Assembly: GCA_002269645.1 (NCBI GenBank) | Contig: NIVC01003584.1 | Location: 25,582 to 89,581 of the forward strand | DNA from: Macrostomum lignano | Lineage: Eukaryota | Reading direction: 5' to 3' | DNA length: 64,000 nucleotides | Part shown: one piece after another, positions 1-40,029 of the stretch | Layout: the number at the start of each line of letters is the position of its first letter | How positions within the stretch are numbered: the first letter of the stretch is position 1 | Translations under genes and position numbers: made by a program | The notes under the pieces: generated by a model | Database searches by the model: none | What the model saw: only the letters and a program-made list of their open reading frames with translations | What the model was told of the DNA's origin: nothing

Positions 1-2698
1 GCCGGTTGCCCTGTGGAATATCACTAAAACTCAATCCTATCCTGTCGCTAGGATTGAAACCAACAGCTTCATAGCAACTTAATACTACTCAGTAGTAGCT
101 TTAGAATGCTCCATTTTAGTATCAATAAATAAAGTGTATAAACTTTTCTTGATCACCTTATCGATGTCACTTGGCAAACTTTATGCTAGCTGCAATGACA
201 ATGCCCCATGGCTACGAAAAGAGAAGGCGGAAAGGAAAGGCGGAAGTGAAAGAAGACAAACGGAGAATGGAAGAAGAACAAGACAAAAGAGTAGACTAAA
301 AACTGATCAAGATGGTCTTTGAGACACCTGGCTCTTGAAAATGGATGGCTGGATGCCAGGATAGCTAATGATGCAGGTTAGAGCATTCCATAATTTACAG
401 TAAGTGGGAATGAAGCACCGCTTCCATTGCCAGTTCTAGACAAAGGAATCTGAAGGGAGAAGCCGTGCTGTTTGCTGCTACAGCGGAGACCAAAGTGTGA
501 CTGTGGAGCAAAAGGGGGCAGGTGCTGCTGAAGTTCGCTGGAGCCTCGACCCCGCAGAAGTCAATGAACAAAAGCAAATCCACCAACAGTTCAGCGAGCC
601 CTAAGGCTATATAGAACCTCGAAGGAGTCACCAATGATCTTGGCAGCCTTCAGCTCGACACGGTCCAATAAAGTAAGATGGGGACTCGCTAGCAGATCAA
701 ACCGACCCGGGTGACAAAAAGTGGTCTAATTTTACCTTTATACTCGTAGGGTAGCCAAATGAGTTTAAGGAATAGGATGTTTAGCTCTAGCAATACAACC
801 GAGCATAGAAGCTGCTTTTCTTTTTTGGGTTATAAGGTGCTCATACAATGTAAGTCAATTATTGTCAATTATGACACCAAGAAGTGTGACTTTATTAGAA
901 ATATTGAAGACTGAGTTTTCAAAAAACTGGTGGAAATCACAGAAATCCTTCCTGCTGCTAATGATTATTTACTCAAATTTATTAGAATCAAACTTGACAT
1001 TCAAGTCAGAACCCCGTTTGAGAAATCTTTTGAAGGTCTGTGCTCAAATAAGATGCAACATCAGTTCTACAAATTTGTAAGGCCTAATTAGGTGGGTGGC
1101 AAAATTTAAAAGAGGCATGTAGAGTGGTATCATCTGAAGACTTTCTGAGCTTCAAGAAGGTGATTTATTAAAAGTAAGAATTTGAGGACCTAAGACAGAT
1201 TCCTAAGAAACACCGGCATTAATATCTCAATTTGGGAACAATTTTATCAAATTGAAACACATAATTTCCTGTTTGGTAAATAGGAAGAAAATCAAGAAAT
1301 AAGGGGGCCAATTATATCCCATAAGATGGTAATTTGTCGATAAGGCCCCAATGCTACACCCGATCAAAGGCTTTACTGATGTCAAGACAAACTACATTAA
1401 GTTCATCCCGAACACACGTGTGTGAAGACAATGCAATCTGCCGCTGAAACTGCACAGCTGATTGGTGGCTCTTTATAACTCAGATAAGATGTGCTCAGTG
1501 CTGCTGGTAATGTGGAATCATTGCCTGATCTCACCAAGAGTAACATTTCTGTCCAAAATCGTCTTCTAAAATCTTCTCCCAAGCCTGGACGCTAAAGTTG
1601 GTCAGGATCGCCGCCGTAGGGGGTGGGGAATACAAACGGAAAGGCAGCTCCAAGGCCAGCAATTGTCTGTTAGACAAATGGAGGACGAAGAAATTTAAAT
1701 AAAGCCCTGGCTGTTCATCTCTTCATCGATCAGTTAAATGAGTGATTGATAGATAAAAATATGGCTGTTAGCTGACGGCCTAAAACCGAGTGACTCGCAG
1801 TAAACAGTTCGGCTCACTGCGAATGAATTATATTAAAATGAAATATGCCATTTTTGATGCAGCTAATGGCTTCTACCCGTGCCCAACAAAGCTGTAATGG
1901 CCCTGCTGCGTTCCGGTTAGTAAGGGACTCTCAGCTTAATCTGACTCACTGCATCGTATTGATTATTCACAGCCAAACCCATTAGAAATTTGTGCAAAAC
2001 GAGAGCTGCATCTGAGCTTAGGCTGGCACTCAAAAGGCTGCACTTGGCTGCACACCTCAACAGGCTGGATTGCCGCGAGCTGTTGGGCTTTAAATTTTGA
2101 CAGCGTCGCTCTGTCAGCGCTTTAGTGTCTTTGGTTAGTGAGTCGCAGTTAAGACCGAACCCGTGCTCAAAGCTGAAAAATTAAAGAAGTGTGGCGGCTA
2201 CCTAATGACTTTCACTCGTAGTCTATGACACCACTTTTGCTTTTACGCACCGCGCTACTCTATTTAGCCAACGGGCATAATCAAATATAAAACCAACCGT
2301 GTTCCTTAAGATTGGCCTTGCTCAGCAAGCCGCCAAAGAAGAATGAAACCATTGGCAATGCTTTCAGAGAAGAGATAATGTCTTATCATTGACATGTTCA
2401 TTATTGGGAGGCAGGAGGAAGAGACAGAGCGGGATGGAGTGTACGTAAGCGATATCCCCTGGAAGGCAAAATGTCTGCATGCCCCATTAACGATCTGATC
2501 CTTGACTATTTGATAATAAATCAGATCTATCTATAATGAAATGGAGACAGGCATGGAAGCATTGCGGTAAATGAGCAGATCGGCCAGATCCAAGTCTTGA
2601 AGATGCCCTGAGTCACTGATGCCAAGTAATAGCGGCTGTTGAGAAATATCACCAACGATAATTGTCTTCACGCAAGTGAATTCTGCTAATGATACACT

Positions 2699-2858
<160 letters not shown>

Positions 2859-3196
2859 ACTAATGGGCCTAAAGAGGTGGCTTTAGTCTGTCTTATTCAT
2901 TACGGCCGCCAGTTGCTTCTCATCTTTTTAGTCACGGAGGGCTGTGGGTTAAAACTCAAATTCATTTATTGACGCAGACACACAATAGGCTAATGGCTTC
3001 GTCTCTGTGATCAGCTGCTGCAGCCTCGATGCGACAACGACAGAAAGCAAATCGAAACTCTCAACGGTCTCCAAGCTCACTGATTCTGGCTAAGGGCGCA
3101 GCGAGTTAATGCATGGAGCTAATGGATTTCAATCCGGCTCACGCCGCGCTGACAGCTCTGTTTACCGATAGACAAGCGGCTGCCTGCTGATCGAGA

Positions 3197-3210
3197 GTCT
3201 CCATGGCAAC
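3197..3210 (+). promoter_or_regulatory. RFX X-box-like motif upstream of WSC-PAN copy A
   Basis: GTCTCCATGGCAAC fits the 14-bp X-box consensus RTHNYYWTRRNRAC, ~90 bp upstream of the ATG, and is identical in all three copies. Confidence 0.45.
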
Positions 3211-3301
3211 GCATCAAAAGGCTGCTGTTATTTAGCCTCTCTCTCGCACAGAGATTCGGCAATCTTCTGCTTAATGCCGCACTGACAAACCCAGCCTGGC
3301 C

Positions 3302-4135
3302 ATGCCTCTCTGCAGGATTCTCTGTACTGCTCCGATCCTGAGCTGCCTGATCTGCGCCGCTCTCTGCCGCCAGTTCCAGATCTCGGACCTCGGCTGCTTC
3401 GTTGACGGCGCGAATGGCGTGAGAGACGTCGTTGACATGAAGCACATTGGCCTCATACGGATCGGAAGCTCCGAGGTATCTCCGATAAACGATGCCAGTG
3501 GCGCTTTTGTCGGCAGCTACTCGATAATGACTCACGAGCTGTGCAGCAGCGTCTGCGCTCTGGGCGGCTTCCAGTTCGCGGCTCTGCAGGCCATATACTG
3601 GTGCTTCTGCGGCAACTCCTACGGGTCGCAGGGCGCTGCTCCCGACTCGGACTGCTTTCTTGCCTGCAGTGGAAACTCGGGCCAGAACTGCGGAGGCAAC
3701 TGGCGAAACCGGGTGCTCCAGCTGAGCTACACCAACGGTGAGTTGCTGCTGCTGGTGGCCACTTGTTTAGCATCTGTTCTCCATATGTTGCTGCATTGTA
3801 TTTTTGCTATTAAACTAAGTTTGAAGCAGTAACTCAAACATTATTAAGTGGCGAACTGTTTCACGTCAAATTATTCATTTCGAATCGAAGGTAACAACTT
3901 CTTCGTCGGCGGCAACCGGACCTTCGTCGAACTCAACATCCCTGATGCGCCGAACTTTACGACTGTGAGCGCTTCAAGTCGGGTCCATTGCGCGTATCTG
4001 TGTGCTAGTAAAGATTCCGGTTGCCAGGCGGTGATCTTCAGCCAGCAGCAGCGCCTGTGCCACCTGCTGGAGTTTGCTGCGGTCCCGGCCGCCTTCAGCA
4101 GCGAAAGCAGCGGCGACTTCTTCGTCCGTGGCTGA
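3302..4135 (+). CDS. Secreted WSC + PAN/apple-like protein, copy A (226 aa, 2 exons)
   Basis: Exons 3302-3737 and 3891-4135 (AACG|gtgag...aag|GT, phase 1). Hydrophobic N-terminal signal peptide; 8-Cys WSC pattern (GCF..C..C..WCFCG..C..AC.G...CGG.WRNRV); 4-Cys PAN-like pattern (HCAYLC..GC.AV.F.....C.L). Confidence 0.88.
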
Positions 4136-6369
4136 GTGCAAATAAAGCAGACGTTGATGCAGTCGAGCAGAGCAGACGAATTGTAAAAAAATGCAATTTC
4201 GTGTTAGATCAAGACGCACAATTTTAAATCATGGCTCAGATTTTTTTATTCCAAAATTCAATACCTTCTATCTATTTTAAATCGCAGCGTTTCAATGCAC
4301 TTTTCTTGATAGCCTTTGAGAATACTCTTCTGTTCGTAGGACATTCGGTTTCCGCTTTTGAGCTGTTAATTGCGGTTGATAGGAAAAGAGTAGCTGTTTG
4401 TGAGTGTCACCGTTTTTTTATAATCTCTTCAAAAAGAGTAAGTCTACCAGAGAAATTTAATGTGTCATTCATTTTATATTGCCTTTTGCTTTCCTCCCAA
4501 ACAGCAGCAAGTGTCATTTGTACACGCTTCTCCTGCATATGCGATACATTTTTTGTGCATATGATTTAATCAGCAATGACATCTGTCAACCCTTGTTTCG
4601 ATTCGGACTAGCAGCTAAGGGCATCTTCAAGAACAACATCTTGCAGATTCGTTTGATTGTGTTGTGTTACTACACGTGATCGAACAGCTCCCTAAGATTG
4701 TTCTGCAGCGAACGAGCCTGGAAATGGCGTCAGCACACTGACCGGACTGACTCCGCTACTGAGCGTGAGATCGCGTCAAGGTAAGGCAGTCAGTCCGTCC
4801 CTAGAGCGTACGGTACCCACTTTGCTCGAGACCCAAATGATTAATGAACACAGACGCGAGTCTTACTTTGACTTCCAATCGGCACGGCCGTAAGCAAGGC
4901 AGCGAGTTCGTCAATTAGTAGTATTGAGATTCCGATATTGCAGTTTATTGATTCTGTAGAGTCTAGTGTCAGGTGTCAACGGGCCACGCTCACCCTGCCC
5001 ACCGCCAGCAATTCTCTATTTATTAAGGCTGCCTGGCGTAAGCCCTAGGGTCTCACGCCAGACAGCATTATCAACAACTAACTTGTTGGCCAATCACCAA
5101 TTGACAAGGGACACGGGAATTGACAAGTGCTAACAAAAAGGGGGAGAGAGGGGCCAGGCCAGCCAATCCGGCTGGGTACGCATAATAAGAGAAGGGGCAG
5201 AGAATAAGGGTTGATACACAACTGGGGGGGGGTTGACGCAGACAGAATGGGGGGGGGGTTTGGCGCAGGCACGCGGCCAGGGGGGGGGGTGGGAGTGCAG
5301 TGCCGGGCACACTTGACCGAGAGCCAGAGATTGCTCATCGGTGCAAGTGCACCCGGGCACAACACCCTCCCCCACCACAAAAAAGAGTGTTCATACAATA
5401 GACTAAAAGTTAAAGCGCATAAAAGTCTCGCACTCCCGACATCAGTTGGGCCGGCAGGGTCTTGTCGCCGCGCTCCGCTGCCAGCCAAGTTGCCACTTCG
5501 CGAACCTCCGTAGGTTTTCCCGGGTTTCCCGCGAACGGTGCTGATGATGCCAGCAGGAGCCGCTCCGAGAGCAGGACAGCGATGCGTCGCGCATGCCATC
5601 GGCTGTGTACCAGCCGAGCGGTGACCTCGAACTTGAGGCCCGGTAACGTAGCCAGGTACAACCATTGAGAGTCTCCGGGCCAGTCCGACGACTCGGTGAC
5701 CAGAATGCGACCTTTCACGAAGCCATTGTCGCCGAGAAGTTGCACGAATTTGTCCTAGACCGACACACCCTGCTCGCCTGAAACCCGGCGCCGTTCCCAC
5801 AGCCGCACCAACAGAGGCAGTTCTCGCTCCCTGGAGAGTTGCACTTGCAACACAACCGCTGCTTTTTGTTGCTCTCAGTCCAGTGCCGCATTTTGCCCAT
5901 CCAACTCGGCTTTCCCAACCGCGATCGCCCGCGGCCACCCAGCAGCCGTCGGAGATCGGCTTCTATCGCAGGTAGGAGTGGCGCGGCCGCTGCCCTTAGG
6001 CCGAGTGCAAAAGGATTCGGGCGTCCCCGATGAGTTGGGCGGTTGCAGCATTTGACGGACACAGGCAGTACGGCGAATTCACCACAGCAACACAGGCTTC
6101 TGGGACGCGGTCTTTTCCACTCGCAGCAGGTCATAACGATCCGATATTGCAATTGCCAGCCGACTCAGCACAGGGTCTCCAGAGTAACTCTGCCACTAAC
6201 TAACGCGTACAGTAACCAGCTATTTGTATTGTTTACCCATACGGTACCCAGCAGTTCCGAGCGCACTTGAGAACTCTCACATAGCACATGTTTCTGGCGA
6301 TTTTTATTCATTTTTATTATTTTTATTTGACTCAAAGCCCTGAGTGGGCAGCTCAGGTGCCCAGCCCAA

Positions 6370-7050
6370 TTAGTACAATATTGGGCTACCGAACCGTCGA
6401 GGCAGGACACCCCTATTAGCACGAGCTGGGCGCCCTTGGTGTACCAGAGGAGGTTCAGCCTGACCTTCCGGGTGGGTCACTCTTCGAGCCCAAATGGCAT
6501 CCGGTTCGTCATCATCATACACAGCCGTCTGCTCAAGATCGGGCATCGTCGGCAACGGGGGGTCGGGTGGTGCCCGGCGGGAGTGTCGCTCGGGGTCCCT
6601 GACCCTACCCTCTGCACGACGTTTTTCCCGAGCCGGCGGACGCCGTTGTCTGGAGTTTGCGTCGACTTTCCTTAAGTTATTGTAATGTACAACTCTCGGC
6701 CTACGAGCCCCTTCGTGCATTATTTTGAAATTGACATCGGAATTTCGTTCGGTTTTATCGCCGGATCTCTTCAGTCTTCAGTTCGCCGCCTTTCCGATCG
6801 TCACGGACAAAATTCTGCAGCAGCACCTTGTCACCGACTTTAAAGCTGAGGCTGCTGGCAGATGCGTGTTTCTGAACGTAATCTTACACAAATTTTGTCC
6901 TGCCATCCCTGCGAAATCGCCCCTGCAGCTTCGATGGGGTGGACTTTATCCCCTGATGAGCTCCTCCAGTCGCAGAGGTGTGCTATTTTTGGATCAATCA
7001 ACAGATATTTTTGATCTTCCGCCTCCAGGCGACGCTCCGTTGACAAATGG
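6370..7050 (-). mobile_element. Degenerate Ty3/gypsy-like integrase C-terminal remnant
   Basis: Minus-strand frame SDVNFKIMHEGARRPRVVHYNNLRK...RANRGVLPRRFG resembles gypsy integrase C-terminal and 3' tail motifs; the upstream core is broken by stops and frameshifts. Confidence 0.55.
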
Positions 7051-9173
7051 CGCTTCTTCTGAAATCTTAGAACAGCTGCTGGCCCTCGTACCTCAAGTTG
7101 CGCTCCTTTGTTGTTGTCCGTACGTTAAAGACGCAAGGATGTCGTTCGTATGCGCCACTAAGCAAGTAAAGTTTTATATCGGAATACGCGACAGACATAC
7201 TTATGTCTGTCCAGTGTAGTCGATATGTTTAAACTTGCAGTTATTTATTGGCAACGTGTTACGTAACAAAATGTACAATTGTACATATACTGTCTAGATT
7301 TAGATGTACCGAAAGTCAGAGAACTTCGAAAGTTTGTTAACAGACTTGCGGACAAGAATGCGCGGCTATAAGAGATTCGGCAGTGTTCATTTAGGTGATA
7401 TCAGATCACGGCTTGACAGGTTCTTAATCTCGTAAATCCCAGAGAGAAATCAGCCTAGGAGTGCGCTTGGCATGACTGAAATGTCGTGCCGTATTCAATC
7501 CGCGCCCAGATAAAATAACGCATCCAAAGTTATTCAGCCAAATACTTTTCTGCCTAGGATAATGGTTGGCATAACACCGGGGAGGCCGACCCAAAAAAGG
7601 GGTAGAAGGACAAAAAAACTAGAGTAGATTGCACTACATTAGCAACAGGCGGTCTTAAAAGTCAGAGAGAGAGAGAAAAGGAAATTAAATCGAGGTGCTG
7701 ACAAGAGAAACCTAAGAATGGAGAAATCAGCACTTGGCGGCTAGACTCGCATTGGCAATTTTAGCAGACAACAAACTCTAATGGGTACGCGCAGTCTAGT
7801 CTTGAGCTAGTATATTTATTGATTCTTAGTTTATTAGAACGCGGGGTTGACAAGGTCTTAGCGGGGGGGAGTTGTACGTGTGCATGACTTGCTATGTACT
7901 CGTACGTTAACCAATCAGAATGGGGGAGGTGAGAAAGGTGGCGTTAGGCGCGGACGGGGGGCAGGCGCAACAGGCGAATCACGAGTAATAGTACAGACGT
8001 GCAATAAAATAAACAAATTTTCTCTTCAAACCACGAGGCGAGGCAGGTAATATTTAAAAGTAATAAAAACTGGACCTCTTTGCGCGCCACCCTCACTGAG
8101 AGGCCTAAAATATCGATCGAGCAACTATTATACTGTACAAACCGCTCTAAATACACACATCAATGACAAAATTAAAACGGCCCAATTGGGGGCTAACACA
8201 CGAAAAATTAGAGGGAAAAAAGAAAATGATACGATTAATTGTCAGTGTATGTTAATAAATCTGACCTCTCCGTCGCAGAGCTAAAAGGCCCAAAAACTAA
8301 GAACCCGGCCGACCAGACCGCCAACTTAATCCACGAGTCCTAGAGGCAGGTCAGGAACGCCAAAACGAACAACTCGCGCAATTACCATACCGTGAGGAAC
8401 TCGAGAGCTCCTGACTAAACTGAATGACTAAAAACTTTCATTACTATGACCTGAGAAGTTATTGAAATAAAAGTTGCTTCAAAGAAGTCAATGAAAAGTT
8501 GTTACGAGCGTATCAGAGAAAGAACCAAAAACTCGAGTTCGAATATCTCTCTTTGCTAATTAAATTTCACCAGTTCGAACCAAGCAATCAAATCGAACCA
8601 AAAGGTACATTCAAAGGTGAGTAAGTCGGGCTTCAAAAGAATGTGTGCCCTTAGCAAACAACTGAAGGTGTGCAGAATACGCCGGCCAGCCGTGTATGTC
8701 CGAATAGCAGGAAACTTGAGTCTCAGAAAAATTACAAAGCTGCTGTTTAGGAGTGAGGCAGAAGGCAATAAATAACCATAACACCTCAATTCTCTCTGGC
8801 TGACTTCCGCCTGAACAGAGATTATAAAATATCTGATTGCAGACACAGCAACTACTCCTTTTTAATTAACAGAGCAAAAGCAGAAATCGAGTGTCTTGCG
8901 CACAGACGCGCATTCGCAGAGTATCAAGGAAAGTACCAGCATTGAAACATTTTAGTAAGAATATAAAGTTGTTAAATTTCGGCACGAGAAAGGCTGGAGC
9001 AAAAATAGTTTCGCTTAAATTTCAGTCAGTGGATTTCAGAGGCGGTTAGTACTTCTAGTCTTTGAGTAAGCTTAGGTATGCTTGCTAGTTGACATTGTTC
9101 GTCTTGATCTAAATTGCGCTTCTTACAGCTCGTCCGCTCTGCTCAGCTGCACCAGCACCTGCTTCATTCGCAC

Positions 9174-10003
9174 TCAGCCACGGACAAAGAAGACGCCGCT
9201 GCTTTTGCTGCTGAAGGCGGCCGGGACCGCAGCATACTCCAGCAGGTGGCACAGGCGCTGCTGCTGGCTGAAGATCACCGCCTGACAACCGGAATCTTTA
9301 CTAGCGCACAGATACGCGCAATGGAGCTGACTTAAAGCGCTCACAGTCGTAAAGTTCGGCGCATCAGGGATGTTGAGTTCGACGAAGGTCCGGTTGCCGC
9401 TGACGAAGAAGTTGTTACCTTCGATTCGAAATGAATAATTTGACATGAAACAGTTCGCCACTTAATAATGTTTGAGTTACTGCTTCAAACTCAGTTCAAA
9501 CTTAGTTTAGTGGCCCAAATCCAATGCAGCAACATATGGAGAACAGATGTTAAACAAGTGGCCACCAGCAGCAGCAACTCACCGTTGGTGTAGCTCAGCT
9601 GGAGCACCCGGTTTCGCCAGCTGCCTCCGCAGTTCTGGCCCCCGTTTCCACTGCAGGCATAGTTGCACTCCCAGTAAGGAGCAGCGCCCTGCGACCCGTA
9701 GGAGTTGCCGCAGAAGCACCAGTATGAGGCCTGCAGAGCCGCGAACTGGAAGCCGCCAAGAGCGCAGACGCTGCTGCACACCTCGCGAGTCATCTGGACG
9801 CAATGGATAGCATAGTCTATCTGTGATACCTCCGAGCTGCCGATCCGTGTGAGGCCAATGTTCTTCATGTCAACGACGTCTCTCACGCCATTCGCGCCGT
9901 CAACGAAGCAGCCGACGTCCGAGGTCTGGAACTGGCGGCAGAGAGAGGCGCAGATCAGGCAGCTCAGGATCGGAGCAGTACAGAGAATCCTGCAGAGAGG
10001 CAT
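9174..10003 (-). CDS. Secreted WSC + PAN/apple-like protein, copy B (221 aa, 2 exons)
   Basis: Exons 10003-9583 and 9418-9174; same splice sites and Cys framework as copy A. Confidence 0.88.
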
Positions 10004-10095
10004 GGCCAGGCTGGGTTTGTCAGTGCGGCATTAAGCAGAAGATTGCCGAATCTCTGTGCGAGAGAGAGGCTAAATAACAGCAGCCTTATTGATGC

Positions 10096-10109
10096 GTTGC
10101 CATGGAGAC
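10096..10109 (-). promoter_or_regulatory. RFX X-box-like motif upstream of copy B
   Basis: GTTGCCATGGAGAC on + is GTCTCCATGGCAAC on -. Confidence 0.45.
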
Positions 10110-10490
10110 TCTCGATCAGCAGGCAGCCGCTTGCCTATCGGTAAACAGAGCTGTCAGCGCGGCGTGAGCCGGATTGAAATCCATTAGCTCCATGCATTAA
10201 CTCGCTGTGCCCTTAGCCAGAATCAGTGAGCTTGGAGACCGTTGAGAGTTTCGATTTGCTTTCTGTCGTTGTCGCATCGAGACTGCGGCAGCTGATCACT
10301 GCTGCATGAGCACCCATAGATATCTGTTTTCAGCTGCACAGGTGGCGACGAAGCCATTAGCCTACCGTGTGTCTGCGTCAATAAATGAATTTGAGTTTTA
10401 ACCCACAGCCCTCCGTGACTAAAAAGATGAGAAGCAACTGGCGGCCGTAATGAATAAGACAGACTGAAGCCACCTCTTTGGGCCCATTAG

Positions 10491-10558
10491 TTATCTATCT
10501 ATCCATCTATCCATCTATCTATCTATCTATCCATCTATCTATATATCTATCTATCTAT
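10491..10558 (+). repeat. (TATC)n microsatellite
   Basis: Short imperfect counterpart of the 2699-2858 tract. Confidence 0.9.
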
Positions 10559-11354
10559 CGTTGGCTAAATAGAGTAGCGCGGTGCGTAAAAGCAAAAGTG
10601 GTGTCATAGACTACGAGTGAAAGTCATTAGGTAGCCGCCACACTTCTTTAATTTTTCAGCTTTGAGCACGGGTTCGGTCTTAACTGCGACTCACTAACCA
10701 AAGACACTAAAGCGCTGACAGAGCGACGCTGTCAAAATTTAAAGCCCAACAGCTCGCGGCAATCCAGCCTGTTGAGGTGTGCAGCCAAGTACAGCCTTTT
10801 GAGTGCCAGCCTAAGCTCAGATGCAGCTCTCGTTTTGCACAAATTTCTAATGGGTTTGGCTGTGAATAATCAATACGATGCAGTGAGTCAGATTAAGCTG
10901 AGAGTCCCTTACTAACCGGAACGCAGCAGGACCATTACAGCTTGGTTGGGCACGGGTAGAAGCCATTAGCTGCATCAAAAATGGCATATTTCATTTTAAT
11001 ATAATTCATTCGCAGTGAGCCGAACTGTTTACTGCGAGTCACTCGGTTTTAGGCCGTCAGATAACAGCCATATTTTTATCTATCAATCACTCATTTAACT
11101 GATCGATTAAGAGATGAACAGCCAGGGCTTTATTTAAATTTCTTCGTCCTCCATTTGTCTAACAGACAATTGCTGGCCTTGGAGCTGCCTTTCCGTTTGT
11201 ATTCCTCACCCCCGACGGCGGCGATCCTGACCAACTTTAGCGTCCAAGCTTGGGAGAAGATTTTAGAAGACGATTTTGGACAGAAATGTTACCCTTGGTG
11301 AGATCAGGCAATGATTCCACATTACCAGCAGCACTGAGCACATCTTATCTTATC

Positions 11355-11808
11355 TTATCGCTGATTGATAAAGGCGGCACCTTTTTTGGGGCAATCGCCA
11401 CTCTGGACAAAGAAATCCCCTGAGCGTTGCCGTTTTCTGGAGCCCCAGGTTAGTGAGCGACGCAGTTTTAGTCTGCGTTTGCTGCGTCTGCGTCCTGTGG
11501 TGTCGTTGTCTAACCCACCCCCGCGGAGGCGCAGGACACGATGGAGGCTGTCTGGCTCGTGCTGGTGCGGACCATTTGTCGTTCCCAGGTCGAGGCCTGG
11601 GTCCACGGGCCCCCCGGGGCTCCGACTGGTTGCTCATGTCAGTTGGAGTCCCTCCTTGGATAGTGTCCGCAAGCTCCGTTGCATAAGCTGCTGGTGCTGC
11701 TGCATCATCGCGGTCATGAAGTCGAGGAGGGCGTTAACATCAATGCTAGGTGTAGCAGAAGAGGCGGCAGAAATCGGTGCAGCGGCCTGAGCAACGGGAG
11801 GAGCCATT
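11355..11808 (-). mobile_element. Gag-like retroelement fragment (degenerate)
   Basis: ATG at ~11806 gives MAPPVAQ...LLDFMTAMMQQHQQLMQ, similar to LTR-element gag N-termini. A later frame contains LHRVLRLRGG and DCPKKGA (possible decayed zinc knuckle). Frames are broken. Confidence 0.4.
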
Positions 11809-11910
11809 GTCCCGGTTTAAGTAGCTGGTGACGCCCCACTGAGGTCGAAAGGCGGTTGCTTAGTTCCGTCATAGCCGCTCTGATTGCTTTTCCCCACGGA
11901 CGGCGTGGAA

Positions 11911-13062
11911 GGCAGAAATGACCAGGTGGGGCTGGGAAGAAGGGTGCGGCACCCTCAGCCTGAGCTGGCCTCGTTGATGTGCAGGTAGCTTGGGGTGTTT
12001 AAAGGGGTGCGAGGGCCGCTAGTCACTGCACATGTCACAACCAGTCTCAACCAAAAACCTCCGAGCTCAGGTAGCCACGGATATCCGCCTGTGGCTCATG
12101 AACTACTTATCGGATGAGCTGCTGCCCCAGCTGCGCCGCCTCATCAACACCCTGGTGAGCCGGGCGGAGTCGGAGACCGGCGTGCTCATGCCGGGCTACA
12201 CCCACCTGCAGCGGGCCCAGCCGGTGCGCTGGTCCCATTGGCTGCTCAGCTACGCCTCCATGCTGCGCAGGGACTGCCAGAGACTGGCCGACTGCCGGGC
12301 CCGCACCGCCGTGTGCCCGCTGGGCAGCGGCGCCCTGGCCGGCAACCCCTTCGAGGTGGACAGGCAGGCGCTGGCCGGTACGGCGAGGGAATCGGAGCTG
12401 GGGAATCGGGGGTTGGGGAATTCGGGTGTGGGGAATTAATGCGTGTGGAATTGGGAAGAGGAAGTATTGTCTTTAATTCTTAGATTCGAGAAAAGGTATT
12501 CCTAGAATCGTGAACAGGTATTCCTGGAATCGTGAACAGGTATTCCTAGAATCGTGAACAGGTATTTTTTAGAATCGTTACCAGGTATTCCTAGAATCGT
12601 GAGCAGGTATTCTTAGAATCGTGAGCAGGTATTCTTAGAATCGAGAACAGGTATTCCTGGAATCTTGAACAGGTATTCCTGGAATCCTGAACAGGTATTC
12701 CTGGAATAGTGAACAGTTATTCTTAGATTCGCGAACAGGTATTCCTAGAATCATGAACAGGTATTGTTACAATCGTGAACAGGTATTCCTGGAATCGTGA
12801 ACAGGTATTCCTGGAATCGTGAACAGGTATTCCTAGAATCGTGAGCAGGTATTGTTACAATCGTGAACAGGTATTCCTGGAATCGTGAAAAGGTATTCCT
12901 GGAATTGTGAACAGGTTTTCCTGGAATCGTGAACAGGTATTCCTGGAATCGTGGACAGGTATTCCTGGAATCGTGAACAGGTATTCCTGGAATTGTGGAC
13001 AGGTATTTCTGGAATTGTGGACAGGTATTTCTGGAATCGTTGACAGGTATTCTTAGAATCGC
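11911..13062 (+). pseudogene. Inverted partial duplicate of ASL (end of exon 1, intron 1, exon 2, part of intron 2)
   Basis: AATGACCAG|gtggggctggg at 11917-11936 matches the ASL exon 1 donor. Exon 12071-12377 is a ~99% copy of 19811-19505 (about 3 differences seen). Exons 1, 3 and 4 are otherwise absent. Confidence 0.92.
12495..13061 (+). repeat. 22-bp minisatellite (ggtattcctggaatcgtgaaca)n, ~26 units
   Basis: Direct tandem periodicity; a single seed copy lies in ASL intron 2 at 18725-18752 (minus strand). Confidence 0.95.
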
Positions 13063-13536
13063 GGGAACCTGCCTCTTCGTGACGTTTCGTTAAAAATTGC
13101 TTTATTATGCATTCAGTTAAGCAACAGCAGTGTGCAGTGATTGAATGCTTCCTAAATTTGCCTTAACCAGTCCCCAGCCCTTTTGGCTAAAGAAAATTCG
13201 TTTCTCATTTATCCAGAAAAAAATTACAGATTCAAAACGGCTTGAGTCTGTTTTATTCATCATCACCGCTAGCTGCTTCACGCAAGCAGACGGTGGGCCT
13301 GATCGCTTCGGCGCCTCCTGCGCAGCCGAAAAAATATCTTGATTTGAGCTCATGCATCTGCGAGCAGTTGCATGCTCGATGTGACAGTGACAGAAAGCAA
13401 ATCGAGACTCCCATAATCGCACAGCTCACTGATTCTTAATAACCACACAAGGCGTTAATATAGATTTCAATCTGGCTCACGCGGCTGCGACAGAGCTCTG
13501 TTTACCGATAGGCAAGCGGCTGCCTGCTGATCGAGA

Positions 13537-13550
13537 GTCTCCATGGCAAC
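13537..13550 (+). promoter_or_regulatory. RFX X-box-like motif upstream of copy C
   Basis: GTCTCCATGGCAAC, same position relative to the ATG as in copies A and B. Confidence 0.45.
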
Positions 13551-13642
13551 GCATCAATAAGGCTGCTGTTATTTAGCCTCTCTCTCGCACAGAGATTCGG
13601 CAATCTTCTGCTTAATGCCGCACTGACAAACCCAGCCTGGCC

Positions 13643-14471
13643 ATGCCTCTCTACAGGATTCTCTGTACTGCTCCGATCCTGAGCTGCCTGATCTGCGCCG
13701 CTCTCTGCCGGGAGTTCCAGATCTCGGACCTCGGCTGCTTCGTTGACTACACAAATGGCGTGCAGAGAGACGTTGGTGGCATGAAGAACATTGGCCTCAC
13801 ACGGATCGGCAGCTCCGAGGTATCTCAGATATACGATTCTATCAACTGCGGCCAGATGACTCGCGAGGTGTGCAGCAGCGTCTGCGCTCTGGGCGGCTTC
13901 CAGTTCGCGGCTCTGCAATCGACATACTGGTGCTTCTGCGGCAACTCCTACGGGTCGCAGGGCGCTGCTCCTGACTCGGACTGCTTTCTTGCCTGCAGTG
14001 GAAACTCGGGCCAGAACTGCGGAGGTGATTGGCGAAACCGGGTGCTCCGGCTGAGCTACACCAACGGTGAGTTGCTGCTGCTGGTGGCCACTTGTTTAAT
14101 TTTTGGCCTTCGTATGTTGCTGCATTGGATTTTGGCGACAGACAAACAAACTTTTAAGCAGACAATCAGATGCCTTTCAGTGGCTCAACTCAACTCAACT
14201 TCAAATTATTTCATTGCAAATCGAAGGTAATGACTTCTTTGTTCGCGGCAACCGGAATTTCGTCGAACTCAACATCCCTGATGCGCCGAACTTTACGACT
14301 GTGAGCGCTCCGAGTCGGATCCAGTGCGTGTCTCTGTGCTCCAGTAAAGGCTCCGGTTGCCAGGCGGTGATCTTCAGTCAGCAGCAGCGCCTGTGCCACC
14401 TGCTGGAGTATGCTGCGGTCCCGGCCGCCTTCAGCAGCGAAAGCAGCGGCGACTTCTTTGTCCGTGGCTGA
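13643..14471 (+). CDS. Secreted WSC + PAN/apple-like protein, copy C (222 aa, 2 exons)
   Basis: Exons 13643-14066 and 14227-14471 with conserved splice sites; flank homology to A/B from ~13235 to ~14840. Confidence 0.88.
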
Positions 14472-16047: not shown

Positions 16048-17160
16048 TGTGTGTCTGTTTGTGTCTGCTTGTCCCAGTGTCTGTCTGTCCCTGCCTGTCC
16101 CAGTGTCTGCCTGTCCCAGTGTCTGTCTCAGTGTCCTCCTGTCCCAGTGTCTGTCTGTCCCAGTGTCTGCCTGTCCCAGTGTCTGCCTGTCCCAGTGTCT
16201 GCCTGTCCCAGTGTCTGCCTGTCCCTGCCTGTCCCATTGTTTGCCTGTCCCAGTGTCTGTCTGTCCCAGTGTCTGCCTGTCCCAGTGTCCTCTTGTCTCC
16301 AGTTTCTGCCTGTCCCAGTGTCTGTCTCAGTGTCCTCCTGTCCCAGTGTCTGTCTGTCCCAGTGTCTGCCTGTCTCAGTGTTTGTCCCAGTGTCCTCTTG
16401 TCTCAGTTTCTGCCTGTCCCAGTGTCTGTCTCAGTGTCCTCCTGTCCCAGTGTCTGTCTGTCCCAGTGTCTTCTTGTCTCAGTGTCTGCCTGTCCCAGTG
16501 CCTGTCCCAGTGCCTGTCCCAGTGCCTGTCCCAGTGCCTGTCCCAGTGCCTGTCCCAGTGCCTGTCCCAGTGCCTGTCCCAGTGCCTGTCCCAGTGTCTT
16601 CTTGTCTCAGTGTCTGCCTGTCCCAGTGCCTGTCCCAGTGCCTGTCCCAGTGTCTGCCTGTCCCAGTGCCTGTCCCAGTGCCTGTCCCAGTGCCTGTCCC
16701 AGTGCCTGTCCCAGTGCCTGTCCCAGTGCCTGTCCCAGTGCCTGTCCCAGTGCCTGTCCCAGTGCCTGTCCCAGTGCCTGTCCCAGTGCCTGTCCCAGTG
16801 CCTGTCCCAGTGCCTGTCCCAGTGTCTTCTTGTCTCAGTGTCTGCCTGTCCCAGTGCCTGTCCCAGTGTCTTCTTGTCTCAGTGTCTGCCTGTCCCAGTG
16901 CCTGTCCCAGTGCCTGTCCCAGTGCCTGTCCCAGTGCCTGTCCCAGTGTCTTCTTGTCTCAGTGTCTGCCTGTCCCAGTGTCTGCCTGTCCCAGTGTCTG
17001 CCTGTCACAGTGTCTGCCTGTCACAGTGTCTGCCTGTCACAGTGTCTGCCTGTCCCTGCCTGTCCCAGTGTCTGCCTGTCCCTGCCTGTCCCAGTGTCTG
17101 CCTGTCTCAGTGTCCTCCTGTCCCAGTGTCTGCCTGTCTGTCTTTCGGTCTGTCAGTCAG
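16048..17160 (+). repeat. 12-bp minisatellite (tgcctgtcccag)n with 16-bp variants
   Basis: Tandem periodicity; source of the spurious SQCL/ACPS/PVPV ORFs. Confidence 0.97.
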
Positions 17161-17538
17161 TGAGGCGGTTCATCCATATCTTATGTTTTCACTCTTAAAA
17201 TCTCTTCTCGTCTCAATGAAGATAAAGGTTAGGAGTTGTAAATCAGGTGAACAATTAAGGTCATATAACCATTCGAAATCAGCAATAAGAATCACACACC
17301 ATAAAAAATGATTAGAAAATTTCAGCAGAAAATGGCTGAACCTAAGAATCAAGCAGAATTCCGTATACCAGTTGGCCTGAAGATTCGCATTTATCATGCC
17401 AGTGAATCGTGATGAACTGCATGCAATTCTATTAGTACTCATAGAGCTAGCAGAAACGCGATGATACCTGCAGTGATTTGCCTAATTCAGCTAAATATTG
17501 CAGTTGTCAGAAAGTTTCTGTTTCAATCATCTCGTTCG

Positions 17539-18483
17539 TCACTTCTGCTCGTCCCCCAGCCACCGCCTGAAGGCAGCCACCTGCTGGCGAACGGACTCCA
17601 GGGCGGTGCCGCCGAAGGCGCCGTACTGCTCAACGCTCGTCTCAAAGTCCCACAGCTGGGTGACGTCTTCGCCGAATTTCTCGCTGCGGGATGATTGGGG
17701 ACAGAGGTCAGTCAGTCAGTCAGTCAGTCAGTCAGTCAGTCAGTCAGTCAGTCAGTCAGTCAGTCAGTCAGTCAGTCAGTCAGTCAGTCAGTCAGTCAGT
17801 CAGTCAGTCAGTCAGTCAGTCAGTCAGTCAGTCAGTCAGTCAGTCAGTCAGTCAGTCAGTCAGTCAGTCAGTCAGTCAGTCAGTCAGTCAGTCAGTCAGT
17901 CAGTCAGTCAGTCAGTCAGTCAGTCAGTCAGTCAGTCAGTCAGTCAGTCAGTCAGTCAGTCAGTCAGTCAGTCAGTCAGTCAGTCAGTCAGTCAGTCAGT
18001 CAGTCAGTCAGTCAGTCAGTCAGTCAGTCAGTCAGTCAGTCAGTCAGTCAGTCAGTCAGTCAGTCAGTCAGTCAGTCAGTCAGTCAGTCAGCTGCTCACC
18101 TGACAGTCCGGAAGTCCTCAAAGGTCAGCTGGTGCAGCTGACACGCCTTGGCTTCGGCCAGCGCCACGCAACGCCCGGAGGCGGCGTGGGCCTCCCTGAA
18201 CGGCACCCCGCGGCGCACCAAATAGTAGGCCAGGTCGGTGGCCAACATGTCGCAGCTGAGGGCGCCGGCGCAGGCCTCCGGATGCACCGTCAGGGTGGCC
18301 ACCACGCCGTCGGCGATTCGAACCACGGCTGACACGGTGTCAGCTGAGTCGAACAAGCCCTCCTTGTCCTCCTGCAGGTCCTTGTTAAAGGCGCTGGGCA
18401 GGGACTTCTGCACCATGAGCAGGGACACCAGGTGGCCGCACAGCCGTCCGGTTTTGCCGCGGATGAGCTCCAGACTGTCCGCG

Positions 18484-18515
<32 letters not shown>

Positions 18516-20505
18516 GCTGTACGCGTCCGACAGCGTGACGAAGCCGAACTCCTTGCTGCAGAAGAGGATCAGGTCCTCGGCGAGGCGGCTCAGGTGGTTG
18601 CCAAGCATGGCGGCCGCGAACTGGAACTCCGAGGCGAAGTCGCGGTCCGCCACGGCGTCCAGACTGTTCCAGGTGACCCCAGAGGTGAAGCCGAGGGCGT
18701 CTGGGATTTCGGAGGGGGCTGATCAATACCTGCTCACGATTCTAAGAATACCACGCCCTAATTCAGCACACCCCAATACCCCACACCCTAATTCTCCACA
18801 CCCAAATACCCCACACCCAAATACCCCAACACCCCAATTCCCAACATCCAATACTCTACAACCCTATTCCTCACACCCAAATACCTCACACCCCAATTCC
18901 CAACATCCAATACTCCACACCCCTATTCCTCACACCCTTATTCCCCACACTCCAATTTCCCCACACCCAAATTCCTAACACCCAATACCCCACACCCCAA
19001 TTCCTAACACCCAAATACCCCACACCCCATTTCTCCACACCCCAATACCCCACACCCCAACTCCCCACACCCCAATTCTCCACACCCCAATTCTCCACAT
19101 CCCAATTCTCCACACCCCAATTCTCCACACCCCAATTCTCCGCAACCCATTTCTCCACAACCTAATTCTCCACACCCCAATTCTCCACACCCCAATTCTC
19201 CGCAACCCATTTCTCCACAACCCATTTCTCCACAACCCAATTCTCCACACCCCAATACCCCACACCCGAATTCCCAACACCCAATTCCCAACACCCAATT
19301 CCCAACACCCAATTCCCCACACCCCGATTCCCCACACCCAATTCCCAACACCCAATTCCCAACACCCAATTCCCCACACCCCGATTCCCCACGCCCAATT
19401 CCCCACACCCCGATTCCCCACACACAATTCCCCACACCCGATTCCCCACACCCAATTCCCCACACCCCGATTCCCCACACCCAATACCCCATCCCTCGCC
19501 CTACCGGCCAGCGCCTGCCTGTCCACCCCGAAGGGGTTGCCGGCCAGGGCGCCGCTGCCCAGCGGGCACACGGCGGTGCGGGCCCGGCAGTCGGCCAGTC
19601 TCTGGCAGTCCCTGCGCAGCATGGAGGCGTAGCTGAGCAGCCAATGGGACCAGCGCACCGGCTGGGCCCGCTGCAGGTGGGTGTAGCCCGGCATGAGCAC
19701 GCCGGTCTCCGACTCCGCCCGGCTGACCAGGGTGTTGATGAGGCGGCGCAGCTGGGGCAGCAGCTCATCCGATAAGTAGTCCATGAGCCACAGGCGGATA
19801 TCCGTGGCTACCTGAGCTCGGAGGTTTTTGGTTGAGACTGGTTGTGACATGAGGGGTCAGTCCCCCCTAAGCTACATGGATAATTAGGGGTCAGTCCCCC
19901 TAAGCTACATGGATAATGAGGGGTCAGTCCCCCCTAAGCTACATAGATAATTAGGGGTCAGTCCCCCCTAAGCTACATGGATAATTAGGGGTCAGTCCCC
20001 CTAAGCTACATGGATAATTAGGGGTCAGTCCCCCCTAAGCTACCTGGATAATGAGGGGTCAGTCCCCAAGCTACCTGGATAATGAGGGGTCAGTCCCCAA
20101 GCTACCTGCACATCAAGAGCGCCAGCTCAGGCTGAGGTGCCGCACCCCTCTCCCCAGCCCCACCTGGTCATTCCTGCTCCGCCCGGTGTGCAGCTTGGCG
20201 GCCGGGGCGCCCACCAGCTCCTTGAGGCGGCGCTCATTGGCGGTGTGGATGTCCTCGTCAGACGGCGCCGGGACGAAGCTGCCGGACTGCCATTCGGCGG
20301 CCACCAGATCCAGGCCGCGGTGCAGCTCGGAGGCCTCCGCCTCGGTCAGGAGGCCCGCGCCAACCAGCGCCGTGGCGTAGGCGCGGCTGCCGCGCAGGTC
20401 CTGGCGCCACATCCGCTTGTCGAAGGACAGGGAATCGTTGAACGCCTGCATGAGCGGGTCCAGGCCGCCTGTGAACCGGCCGCCCCACAGCTTGGACTCG
20501 GACAC
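17539..20505 (-). CDS. ASL: Argininosuccinate lyase (4 exons, 464 aa without the initiator Met)
   Basis: Exons 20505-20164, 19811-19505, 18700-18100 and 17683-17539, all GT-AG and in frame. Motifs [40 protein letters not shown] signature and [11 protein letters not shown]. No adjacent ATG (in-frame TAA at 20532-20530). Confidence 0.97.
17707..18090 (-). repeat. (TGAC)n microsatellite filling ASL intron 3
   Basis: About 96 perfect units occupying 384 of 416 intron bases. Confidence 0.99.
18755..19497 (-). repeat. G-rich ~19-20-bp minisatellite in ASL intron 2
   Basis: Units like gaattggggtgtggagaat on the sense strand. Confidence 0.95.
19851..20105 (+). repeat. 33-bp minisatellite in ASL intron 1
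   Basis: ggggtcagtccccctaagctacatggataatta, about 7-8 units. Confidence 0.95.
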
Positions 20506-21363: not shown

Positions 21364-21368
21364 TCTCG

Positions 21369-22310
21369 GCCTGGGTCCCTTTTTCATGGGGCTGTGAGCA
21401 TCTTGGCCTGGATCCCTTTTTCATGGGGCTGTGAGCATCTTGGCCTGGATCCCTTTTTCATGGGGCTGTGAGCATCTTGGCCTGGATCCCTTTTTCATGG
21501 GGCTGTGAGCATCTTGGCGCAGCGCATCTTGGCCTGGATCCCTTTTTCATGGGGCTGTGAGCATCTTGGCCTGGATCCATTTTTCATGGGGCTGTGAGCA
21601 TCTTGGCCTGGATCCATTTTTCATGGGCTGTGAGCATCTTGGCCTGGATCCCTTTTTCATGGGGCTGTGAGCATCTTGGCCTGGATCCCTTTTTCATGGG
21701 GCTGTGAGCATCTTGGCCTGGATCCCTTTTTAATGGGGCTGTGAGCATCTTGGCCTGGATCCCTTTTTCATGGGGCTGTGAGCATCTTGGCCTGGATCCC
21801 TTTTTCATGGGGCTGTGAGCATCTTGGCCTGGATCCCTTTTTCATGGGGCTGTGAGCATCTTGGCGCAGCGCATCTTGGCCTGGATCCCTTTTTCATGGG
21901 GCTGTGAGCATCTTGGCCTGGATCCATTTTTCATGGGGCTGTGAGCATCTTGGCCTGGATCCATTTTTCATGGGGCTGTGAGCATCTTGGCCTGGATCCC
22001 TTTTTCATGGGGCTGTGAGCATCTTGGCCTGGATCCCTTTTTCATGGGGCTGTGAGCATCTTGGCCTGGATCCCTTTTTAATGGGGCTGTGAGCATCTTG
22101 GCCTGGATCCCTTTTTCATGGGGCTGTGAGCATCTTGGCCTGGATCCCTTTTTCATGGGGCTGTGAGCATCTTGGCCTGGATCCCTTTTTCATGGGGCTG
22201 TGAGCATCTTGGCCTGGATCCATTTTTCATGGGGCTGTGAGCATCTTGGCGCAGCGCATCTTGGCCTGGATCCCTTTTTCATGGGGCTGTGAGCATCTTG
22301 GCGCAGCGCA
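21369..22310 (+). repeat. 37-bp minisatellite (catcttggcctggatccctttttcatggggctgtgag)n
   Basis: About 24 units with a recurrent 15-bp catcttggcgcagcg insert; no spacers. Confidence 0.97.
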
Positions 22311-22349
22311 TCGTCCACAAAAGGCGCCAATACTGTAAGCAGGCACTCA

Positions 22350-22505
22350 CACACGCTCACACAGGATGTACAGAGGCCCTTAACTTTCCAACCGTCAGGC
22401 ATGTACAGTCTCGGTGCTTTGGGCTGAGTCGCACAACCCCCAAAATGAATGTGACCGCGCAGAGTGCAGGTGGGCCCATCCTAGATGCGTACTAACCACC
22501 ACCAA
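22350..22505 (-). mobile_element. SINE-family copy (diverged)
   Basis: cacaggatgtacagaggcc...ggcatgtacag...aatgtgaccgc aligns with 20668-20815. Confidence 0.55.
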
Positions 22506-22796
22506 GTCTGCTTAACTTGCATCGCTTACGGTGAATGCTCTGATTGCTGAAGCCTCACCTTACTTTCACCAGTTGCAGGTTTGCTTTCCGACATGCTTTT
22601 CAAGTTATTTGATTGGTTTATTAACTGTTACGGACAGGTAGGCAAATCTGAAAGGGGATAATTGAAAATACCATTCGACATATTTACCCGGACTTCGAAC
22701 TCAGGATTTACAGTCACTATCATTTCATAAAACTGATTCTATATACCACTAACCATACATAAAGCTTGAAGCTCATGTTAAACTATGAGTTATTTA

Positions 22797-23525
22797 CATT
22801 TACCCTACCTGATGCTTCAGGCTAAACAATTTGAGCTCCTAATATTTACCCTACCTGAAGCTTCAGGTTGAACAATGAGTTCCTCATATTTACCCTACCT
22901 GATGCTTCAGGCTAATCAATTTGAGCTCCTAATATTTACCCTACCTGAAGCTTCAGGTTGAACAATGAGTTCCTCATATTTACCCTACCTGAAGCTTCAG
23001 GTTGAACAATGAGCTCCTCATATTTACCCTACCTGAAGCTTCAGGTTGAACAATGAGCTCCTCATATTTACCCTACCTGAAGCTTCAGGTTGAACAATGA
23101 GCTCCTCATATTTACCCTACCTGAAGCTTCAGGTTGAACAATGAGCTCCTCATATTTACCCAACCTGAAGCTTCAGGTTGAACAATGAGTTCCTCATATT
23201 TACCCAACCTGAAGATTCAGGCTAAACAATTTGAGTTCCTCATATTTACCCAACCTGAAGCCTCAGGTTGAACAATGAGCTCCTCATAATTACCCTACCT
23301 GAAGCCTCAGGTTGAACAATGAGTTCCTCATATTTACCCAACCTGAAGATTCAGGCTAAACAATTTGAGCTCCTCATATTTACCCAACCTGAAGCCTCAG
23401 GTTGAACAATGAGCTCCTCATATTTACCCAACCTGAAGATTCAGGCTAAACAATTTGAGCTCCTCATATTTACCCAACCTGAAGCCCCAGGTTGAACAAT
23501 GAGCTCCTTATATCTAAACTACCTA
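22797..23525 (+). repeat. 44-bp minisatellite containing the 16-bp palindrome ACCTGAAGCTTCAGGT
   Basis: Period 44 (22981 to 23025); two alternating variants; no unique spacers. Confidence 0.96.
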
Positions 23526-24960: not shown

Positions 24961-24986
24961 TTTCCCCGCCTGTCCCCAGACGGTCT

Positions 24987-39985: not shown

Positions 39986-40029
39986 GCGCTACAAGCAACT
40001 GTGGGCACTACAATATACTTGGGAACAAA

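Follow-up and report, generated by a model that had tools for sequence, protein, structure and literature searches.

Macrostomum lignano carries three genes, which we designate A, B and C, within a 64,000-nucleotide stretch of contig NIVC01003584.1 (hereafter C3584; positions 25,582 to 89,581 of the forward strand, assembly GCA_002269645.1). We refer to the whole of this stretch as the window, and coordinates are those of the window unless a contig is named. Each gene encodes a small protein with a hydrophobic leader, a WSC domain and a PAN/apple-type domain, and the coding sequences of A and B differ more than the DNA that flanks them. We consider it likely that this pattern arose in two steps, a young inverted duplication and then gene conversion between paralogs, in a multigene family that is large and mosaic. 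A and B are the two arms of the duplication, with flanks that are 98-99% identical, and ectopic (interparalog) conversion would have replaced part of exon 1 in one arm, most probably A. The copied stretch, of 187 bp or more but no longer than about 298 bp, would have come from G2, a paralog 16 kb upstream, or from a G2-type gene, and would have brought in a long-loop cassette; an adjacent stretch of about 70 bp is of the type carried by gene C and by another family locus, L002. The genes, the duplication and the two tracts are laid out as follows.

3302-3737, forward strand: gene A exon 1 (signal peptide and WSC domain), 145 codons plus 1 nucleotide (nt), with donor GTGAGT at 3738
3891-4135, forward strand: gene A exon 2 (linker and PAN/apple domain), with stop codon TGA at 4133-4135 and AATAAA directly 3'
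9583-10003, reverse strand: gene B exon 1 (signal peptide and WSC), with a short loop, an extra Cys and the PYWECNY patch
9174-9418, reverse strand: gene B exon 2 (PAN)
13643-14066, forward strand: gene C exon 1, with a short loop and the PDSDCFL patch
14227-14471, forward strand: gene C exon 2 (PAN)
1482-4189, forward strand: arm 1 of the inverted duplication (upstream flank of A and gene A), interrupted by the A-only insert
9108-11350, reverse strand: arm 2 of the inverted duplication (gene B and its upstream flank)
2274-2790: A-only insert of 517 bp, adjoining a (GATA)40 array at 2699-2858
4700-6200, no strand assigned: A-B spacer, part of a dispersed repeat (at least 40 copies in the genome)
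3433-3629, forward strand: tract 1 in A (coding nt 132-328), 100% identical to G2 over 197 bp and encoding the long loop PINDASGAFVGSYSI
3630-3699, forward strand: tract 2 in A (coding nt 329-398, the PDSDCFL patch), of the type of C and L002

We compared the divergence of the two arms piece by piece. The initial annotation, a preliminary reading of the window, had reported about nine differences between A and B in a 790-bp upstream flank, and this count holds: the distal 5' flank (1482-2273 vs 10559-11350) shows 9 mismatches in 792 bp (1.1%), and the whole alignable 5' flank shows 24 in 1302 bp (1.8%). The whole coding sequence (CDS) differs at 50 of 666 sites (7.5%) and also carries an indel of 15 nt. 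Coding nt 142-328 account for 25 of these mismatches and the indel (14.5%), and nt 329-398 for another 12 (17%); outside both tracts the CDS differs at 13 of 424 sites (3.1%), and the intron has 9 mismatches (5.9%). The CDS therefore looks more diverged than the flanks because 37 of the 50 coding mismatches (74%), as well as the indel, are concentrated in the two tracts. At the protein level we counted 30 substitutions, a five-residue indel and nine purely silent codons, which corrects an earlier tally of about 22 replacements against about four silent changes. The claim that the coding sequence is more diverged than its surroundings stands for the A/B pair (7.5% vs 1.8%) but fails for comparisons with C: A-C and B-C differ by 8-9% in the CDS and by 23-24% in the intron, and their flanks beyond about -150 range from 17% divergence to unalignable. 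The excess of coding divergence between A and B is real and pair-specific, not family-wide. In the spacer between the arms, a 665-bp unit of the dispersed repeat recurs pairwise, 6.4-7.3 kb apart, which indicates a long terminal repeat (LTR) retroelement; the 3' flank of A is unlike those of B and C because it has been replaced by a fragment of this LTR-type repeat.

The comparison with other paralogs rests on 24 genes from the closest clades (23 of the CDSs being distinct) and, for exon 1, on an alignment of 25 genes. G2 lies on the minus strand at G000:C3584:12302-12734, outside the window, and has no mismatch to A over nt 132-328 and three over nt 31-328. A and B differ at 55 exon-1 columns. 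At every one of these within nt 58-293, A carries the G2 state; within nt 342-398 it carries the L002 state at every A/B-differing site, and the C state at each of them except nt 342. Tract 2 of A has 12 mismatches to B and 1 to L002; against C it has 3 in the window alignment and, within nt 329-395, 1 in the exon-1 alignment. B has about three private sites in exon 1, and A has none. The nearest relative of A accordingly changes along the gene: it is B in nt 1-141 (distance 0.021), G2 in nt 142-330 (0.005, with B at 0.161), L002 in nt 331-436 (0.037, with C at 0.046 and B at 0.111), and B again in exon 2 (0.042). Although they differ at 83 of 238 sites overall, A and G2 match at 78 polymorphic sites in a row (permutation p<0.001). 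A statistic like the pairwise homoplasy index (PHI) was 0.280, against a permuted value of 0.351 +/- 0.010 (p<0.0005), and 35% of informative site pairs failed the four-gamete test.

The N-terminus, upstream region and exon 2 of the G2 subfamily are all unlike those of A, so the tract that A shares with G2 lies strictly inside exon 1, and this confinement fits what would be expected of a conversion tract. Given its position 16 kb upstream on the same contig and its complete identity over 197 bp, G2 is a plausible nearby donor.

Mosaic structure is not peculiar to A. By segment distances and partition trees, gene C is also a mosaic, G3-like (G3 being another paralog on C3584) except in nt 331-436, where it is L002-like. 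Mosaics were reproduced on independent contigs in the pairs C/L017 (L017 being on contig C878) and L002/L003, in the G2 copies (on four contigs) and in the G3 copies. Near-identical copies at G2_2974 (G000:C2974:~102033-102446) and L016 (G000:C1517:~71755-72186) differ by tight clusters of changes, in which LQAIYWCFCGN becomes LQSAFWCYCGK or LQAMQWCYCGN; these clusters have the appearance of additional micro-conversion tracts, all at one patch. The variant tract of G2_2974 is also present in the UniProt protein P0001, which presumably derives from the separate, earlier ML2 assembly. Across the family, the same process would shuffle a limited set of old variants at three to four hypervariable patches, which lie in WSC and in the first (N-terminal) half of PAN.

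Which of the two copies changed can be approached through synteny. The unique region far upstream of A (contig positions 19543-27770) has homologs on contigs C878 and C4204 that are 97.8-99.5% identical, and on both contigs the gene that directly follows this region is B-type, with 97% identity to B and 92% to A. B differs from these B-type genes at only six exon-1 sites. The presence of a B-type gene at the syntenic position of A favours A as the recipient, and conversion would thus have run from the G2-type sequence into A. At the position equivalent to that of B, C878 carries an exon-2-only fragment that is itself mosaic, with 9 mismatches to the B-type gene of C878 and 11 to A. The history is therefore more complex than a single event: we considered a simple flip between C3584 and C878 as the cause of the B-type gene at the position of A, and did not adopt it because that exon-2-only fragment is a mosaic.

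An alternative explanation is that positive diversifying selection after the duplication drove new substitutions in a recognition surface, and that these make up the coding excess between A and B. The initial annotation had taken this view, interpreting the excess as rapid diversifying substitution and expecting dN/dS (the ratio of nonsynonymous to synonymous divergence, also omega) to be above 1. We consider this unlikely. Almost all of the A/B differences pre-exist in other paralogs and are concentrated in the two tracts, and the few changes that are truly specific to the A or B lineage, most of which are nonsynonymous, are the part of the pattern that selection would account for. The A-B comparison by NG86 (Nd 38.5, Sd 14.5) gives a dN of 0.079 and a dS of 0.103, for a ratio of 0.77. 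Pairwise ratios across the family are 0.1-0.8, with values of 1 or more in a few near-identical pairs on very few changes. A one-ratio codon model (M0) yields an omega of 0.42 overall and, by segment, 0.38 for codons 1-47, 0.38 for codons 48-110, 0.81 for codons 111-146 and 0.29 for exon 2. The mean pairwise dN/dS with codon bootstrap is 0.57 (0.45-0.74) for the whole gene and 0.79 (0.46-1.39) for codons 111-146, rising in those codons to 1.18 (0.60-2.92) within subfamily I. Regional values of 0.8-1.2 in codons 111-146 are what diversifying selection might be expected to leave, but no region has an interval wholly above 1, and neither the whole gene nor any region has a dN/dS significantly above 1 in the 24 family genes.

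The behaviour of dS also bears on this question. In the loop dS is 0.43-0.69, against a gene mean of 0.23, and the C-terminal half of PAN has only 0.02-0.07. Window by window, dS is correlated with dN (rho 0.51, p 0.03). Because dS is raised in the patches along with dN, we infer that the variable patches are old, deep variants rather than the result of a nonsynonymous-only acceleration. The conserved parts, for their part, are homogenised or constrained at the nucleotide level.

Evidence for diversifying selection comes from a site-class test of the M1a/M2a type, in which branch lengths were fixed and each segment was given a separate tree. The M2a-like model is favoured over the M1a-like model in two WSC partitions only. 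For codons 48-110 the likelihood-ratio test (LRT) statistic is 16.4 (2% of sites, omega ~7.5), against a null 95th percentile of 3.0, and for codons 111-146 it is 19.9 (26% of sites, omega ~3), against 2.3, the null percentiles having been obtained from simulations without recombination. Candidate sites are A98, A119, A126 and A133, with A44, A116 and A120 weaker. Recombination inflates M2a-type tests, and since it is pervasive in this family we regard the site-class signal as unreliable. A per-site likelihood-ratio (FEL-like) test singled out A44 alone (p ~0.002 among 228 codons), which is lost after correction, and placed about 49 codons under purifying selection. We discounted FUBAR-like smoothed posteriors, whose prior mass on beta>alpha was 0.37-0.46 (400 grid cells for 228 sites), and relied on LRTs and pairwise estimates. 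The site-model check proposed in the initial annotation favours an omega>1 class in the WSC partitions, but with fixed branch lengths, pervasive recombination and per-site tests that do not survive correction. Diversifying selection acting on shuffled WSC variants is suggested by these data but not demonstrated by them.

A second alternative is that reads from different paralogs were mixed in the Mlig_3_7 consensus, so that the G2-identical tract of A is an artefact of assembly or polishing. The assembly invites this concern: only about 64% of its bases are error-free by REAPR, and it contains 180 Mb of duplicated blocks that are at least 95% identical (PMC5730564). The combination found in A is present on one contig only, and complete identity to G2 is what a mixed consensus would give. 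We nevertheless consider an artefact quite improbable, as the reading frame stays open and clean through a tract that differs from B by 25 mismatches and a 15-nt indel, and as mosaicism is family-wide and was reproduced on independent contigs. The recurrence of the G2_2974 variant in P0001, with its presumed ML2 origin, points in the same direction.

It is very improbable that relaxed constraint and birth-and-death decay, with redundant copies drifting and the patches being unconstrained loops, account for the data, for while omega is 0.4-0.8, about eight of the 30 best exon-1 matches are defective and in some near-identical pairs a handful of changes gives an omega close to 1 or higher, the frames, splice sites and scaffold Cys of A, B and C are intact (as are both glycosylation sequons in A and B, and NFT in C), purifying selection acts on some 49 codons, conservation is extreme in the promoter and in the C-terminal half of PAN, GC at third codon positions (GC3) is 0.74-0.81 in exons against an intron GC of 0.38-0.41, and drift leaves tracts identical to other paralogs unexplained.

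Several points weigh against duplication followed by conversion as we have set it out. Only one contig carries the mosaic of A, in a PacBio/Illumina assembly that is redundant, and a polishing or assembly chimera of A is possible. The mosaic exon-2-only fragment on C878 makes both the direction of transfer and the history of the inverted pair tentative. The site-class LRTs lie far above their null, and point-mutational positive selection may be contributing. Finally, expression, secretion and glycan binding of the family proteins are putative.

All three genes have intact reading frames, encoding proteins of 226 (A), 221 (B) and 222 (C) amino acids, and each is split by a GT-AG intron in phase 1 (GTGAGT...TCGAAG). 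Each protein opens with a hydrophobic leader (mean Kyte-Doolittle value 2.4 over residues 6-22). We scored the domains against the Pfam gathering thresholds for WSC (PF01822, 27.8 bits) and PAN_1 (PF00024, 21.4 bits). The WSC scores, 53.6 for A, 48.4 for B and 50.9 for C, all exceed the threshold, and together with a WSC-like predicted fold they confirm the WSC domain that the initial annotation had recognised. For its PAN/apple assignment the PAN_1 scores are borderline, with A passing at 22.0 and C (21.3) and B (19.7) falling just below, and a four-Cys core is present. The C-terminal half of PAN (CQAVIFSQQQRLCHLL) is a family-specific motif and is extremely conserved.

The WSC part contains eight Cys and the PAN part four. 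In A the WSC Cys are C32, C81, C85, C101, C103, C118, C122 and C130, and all eight recur in every one of the 24 family genes (23 distinct CDSs) that were aligned. Forms with the short loop carry a ninth, at Cys68 in B and Cys69 in C and also in G1 and G3 on G000:C3584, which the long-loop forms A, G2 and L002 lack. The Cys framework is therefore nearly invariant, as had been claimed, with one extra Cys in short-loop forms; the ninth Cys is presumably unpaired and might permit covalent dimerisation or tethering. Two N-glycosylation sequons, NRT and NFT, are found in A and B, and NFT alone in C. The loop swap described earlier is present, the variants being PINDASGAFVGSYSI (long) in A, QIDYAIHCVQ in B and QIYDSINCGQ in C, and so is the second variable patch, PDSDCFL in A and C vs PYWECNY in B.

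An AlphaFold2 model has a mean predicted local distance difference test (pLDDT) score of 65.5, with 76-91 in the WSC core, 70-80 in the PAN part and less than 50 in loop residues 53-64. In structure comparison it aligns with the WSC domain of Kremen (E ~4e-6 to 7e-6, 26-28% identity, root-mean-square deviation 2.0 A over ~114 columns) and with that of yeast Wsc1 (E 1.6e-5, TM 0.72 normalised to the target). Its second half resembles the N domain of HGF NK1 and the PAN domain of plasminogen weakly (E 0.27-1.1, probability 0.8-0.93, ~55 residues).

We next consider the family to which A, B and C belong. Searched with protein A, the whole M. lignano genome contains at least 181 exon matches, of which at least about 100, by our count, are of the WSC-exon type, spread over some 60 contigs. 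Contig C3584 alone carries six copies within 30 kb, with G1, G2 and G3 just upstream of the window, and redundant or homeologous versions of the cluster are found on contigs C878, C4204, C2171 and C2974. The close protein relatives are all from M. lignano, uncharacterised and labelled 'WSC domain-containing' or 'Apple domain-containing'. The WSC domain itself is widespread, with 3487 matches at E <=0.001 among 1.84 billion representative proteins; among two-domain relatives of about 210 amino acids, every one with a checked source is from M. lignano. The exact sequences of eight family proteins were not found in a collection of 15 billion proteins. A 1003-bp Logan contig from SRR24204725 (L052) contains a signal peptide and WSC exon that is 47% identical and ends with a donor, GTGAGG, that coincides in position with that of A; it is a relative in another sample, perhaps from another Macrostomum species. 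A, B and C thus belong to a large clustered WSC-PAN family that, on present data, is apparently lineage-specific.

The defective copies mentioned above include one pseudogene lineage, in which a W-to-stop change (GGD*RNRV) is common to L009 (C462), L011 (C135) and L013 (C2093), as well as L029, whose exon-1 match is split over two frames by a probable frameshift, and L012, in which the region of the exon junction is disrupted. Three of the 30 best matches are exon-1-only copies (L004, L017 and L030), a group that includes G2 on C3584. The defective and partial copies indicate birth-and-death turnover, and they are possible conversion donors. The aligned paralogs bear out the initial annotation in its description of a multigene family of secreted-type WSC-PAN proteins, in which a few hypervariable patches sit on a scaffold that is otherwise conserved. 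This WSC-PAN family of M. lignano is uncharacterised, real and mosaic, and of an evolutionary kind that is already known.

Outside the patches, parts of the genes are highly uniform. The signal peptide, described at the outset as nearly invariant, stays nearly uniform across the family, as do the promoter, the Cys scaffold and the C-terminal half of PAN. The uniform upstream region comprises three segments.

3162-3301, forward strand: proximal upstream 140 bp of A, presumed core promoter and 5' untranslated region (5'UTR)
10004-10143, reverse strand: proximal upstream 140 bp of B, presumed core promoter and 5'UTR
13503-13642: proximal upstream 140 bp of C, presumed core promoter and 5'UTR

These 140 bp are ~97-100% identical in the seven subfamily-I genes that were aligned, among which synonymous divergence is 0.1-0.2; the upstream region of L018 does not align. 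Because the identity persists despite this synonymous divergence, we presume that the segment is a core promoter and 5'UTR that these genes have in common. In PAN, the codons with the dS of 0.02-0.07 are 187-206 of A (4009-4068; GCQAVIFSQQQRLCHLLE), in the C-terminal half. Concerted evolution or constraint could each explain the nucleotide-level homogeneity of these two regions. Base composition is also distinctive: flanking GC is 0.37-0.51, and the high exon GC3 of A, B and C would fit codon-usage selection on expressed genes better than it fits GC-biased gene conversion alone, which we consider unlikely as the sole cause with introns that are AT-rich.

Other families are diversified by interparalog conversion or mosaicism, among them MHC class II exon 2, plant R-gene clusters, sea-urchin Sp185/333, snail FREPs and the pseudogene-templated chicken immunoglobulin V genes. 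The WSC-PAN family resembles these in having clustered paralogs with a conserved leader and scaffold and a few hypervariable patches, in carrying its variants in different combinations in different paralogs with a significant recombination signal, and in having both dS and dN raised in the patches and partial copies as potential donors. It differs from them in its domain type (WSC plus PAN), in that an immune role, somatic diversification and expression are hypothetical for it, and in that a dN/dS above 1 is not established.

The proteins can likewise be set beside characterised proteins that share their domains. Kremen1 (5FWS-5FWV) and yeast Wsc1 (7PZ2; PMC9024836) have the WSC match and the eight-Cys pattern in common with the family, whose predicted fold aligns with theirs. 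Unlike them, A, B and C are small two-domain proteins, without the kringle, CUB and transmembrane regions of Kremen or the Ser/Thr-rich stalk and transmembrane region of Wsc1, and have a long or short variable loop inserted before the WSC core. With the PAN/apple domains of HGF, plasminogen and apicomplexan lectins the family shares a four-Cys core and a borderline PAN_1 match, the likeness of fold to HGF and plasminogen being weak, and its C-terminal PAN half is a motif of its own. A, B and C may be secreted lectin-like proteins whose WSC loops set ligand specificity; the roles suggested in the initial annotation, as immune lectin, mucus or seminal-fluid protein, are conjectural.

What such proteins might do in M. 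lignano is suggested by earlier work, in which WSC proteins are the commonest annotated class among 76 prostate-limited putative seminal-fluid transcripts of this species (PMC5977470 Table S1; PMC6953679; PMC4490696). The Mlig-pro WSC transcripts (pro4, 5, 11, 46 and others) are like A, B and C in coming from the same species and encoding a signal peptide and a WSC domain, and, like the WSC-PAN family, they have many paralogs per transcript in the Mlig_3_7 annotation. However, none of 18 published Mlig-pro primer pairs (PMC6953679 supplement, out of the 76 transcripts) matched the window or the fetched family loci with up to three mismatches, and primers for Mlig-pro46 and pro63 (bioRxiv 10.1101/734301) had no match in the window or family loci. 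A Mlig-pro46 primer maps instead to C40:1208361, in a distant AT-rich gene with the signal peptide and WSC domain in one exon; the pro46/pro63 gene has a GC content of 38%, against 59-60% in the WSC-PAN family. A seminal-fluid role of the family is a lead, not a result.

A separate observation concerns these primers. At the same locus (L051; G000:C40, about 1208361-1208620), the forward primer for pro46 and the reverse primer for pro63 both fall in the single signal peptide and WSC exon (positions 1501 and 1745 of L051). Mlig-pro46 and pro63 have been treated as independent seminal-fluid candidates, and the occurrence of both primers in one exon suggests cross-targeting of paralogs in RNA interference (RNAi) or quantitative polymerase chain reaction experiments.

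The remainder of the window is rich in repeats. Minisatellite arrays lie at 16051-19491, 21364-23524, 24145-27717, 29100-33930, 34453-43802 and 62672-63692, with periods of 4-141 bp and up to ~1.1 kb per array, which fits the repeat-rich genome of M. lignano; a 22-bp array is located at 12476-13061, just upstream of gene C. Two 360-bp exon-like segments, at 12031-12390 on the forward and 19492-19851 on the reverse strand, match a Lyase_1 (argininosuccinate-lyase-like) fragment (Pfam E ~5e-33). They form an inverted pair, 99% identical and 7.1 kb apart, with minisatellite arrays between them. Of the segments at 44356-45675 (reverse strand) and 55628-57571 (forward strand), one open frame has mariner/Tc1-type transposase domains (HTH_48, DDE_3) and another has reverse-transcriptase and RNase H domains.

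Taken together, these results document a large, uncharacterised and apparently lineage-restricted family of secreted-type WSC-PAN proteins in a model flatworm. They also carry a caution, in that conversion from a third paralog can mimic diversifying selection when the CDS of recent duplicates is compared with their flanks, and paralog-aware tests are needed before positive selection is claimed. Because the paralogs share long identical tracts, they are a trap for RNAi, in situ hybridisation and expression quantification in M. lignano. Selection may favour the new combinations that conversion generates. An extension that we regard as doubtful is that the family is a system of germline cassette shuffling, in which some 100 clustered genes and fragments, including the exon-1-only G2, exchange short tracts and so recombine a small set of old loop variants into many binding specificities, while promoter, leader and scaffold stay constant. 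If this were true, new combinations would be favoured by sexual conflict over seminal fluid or by the recognition of microbes or glycans, and the family would be a flatworm counterpart of Sp185/333, FREP and MHC-type diversification, built on a WSC lectin fold. If its members are expressed in reproductive or mucosal tissue, the family would offer a tractable case of recognition diversity generated by recombination among paralogs.

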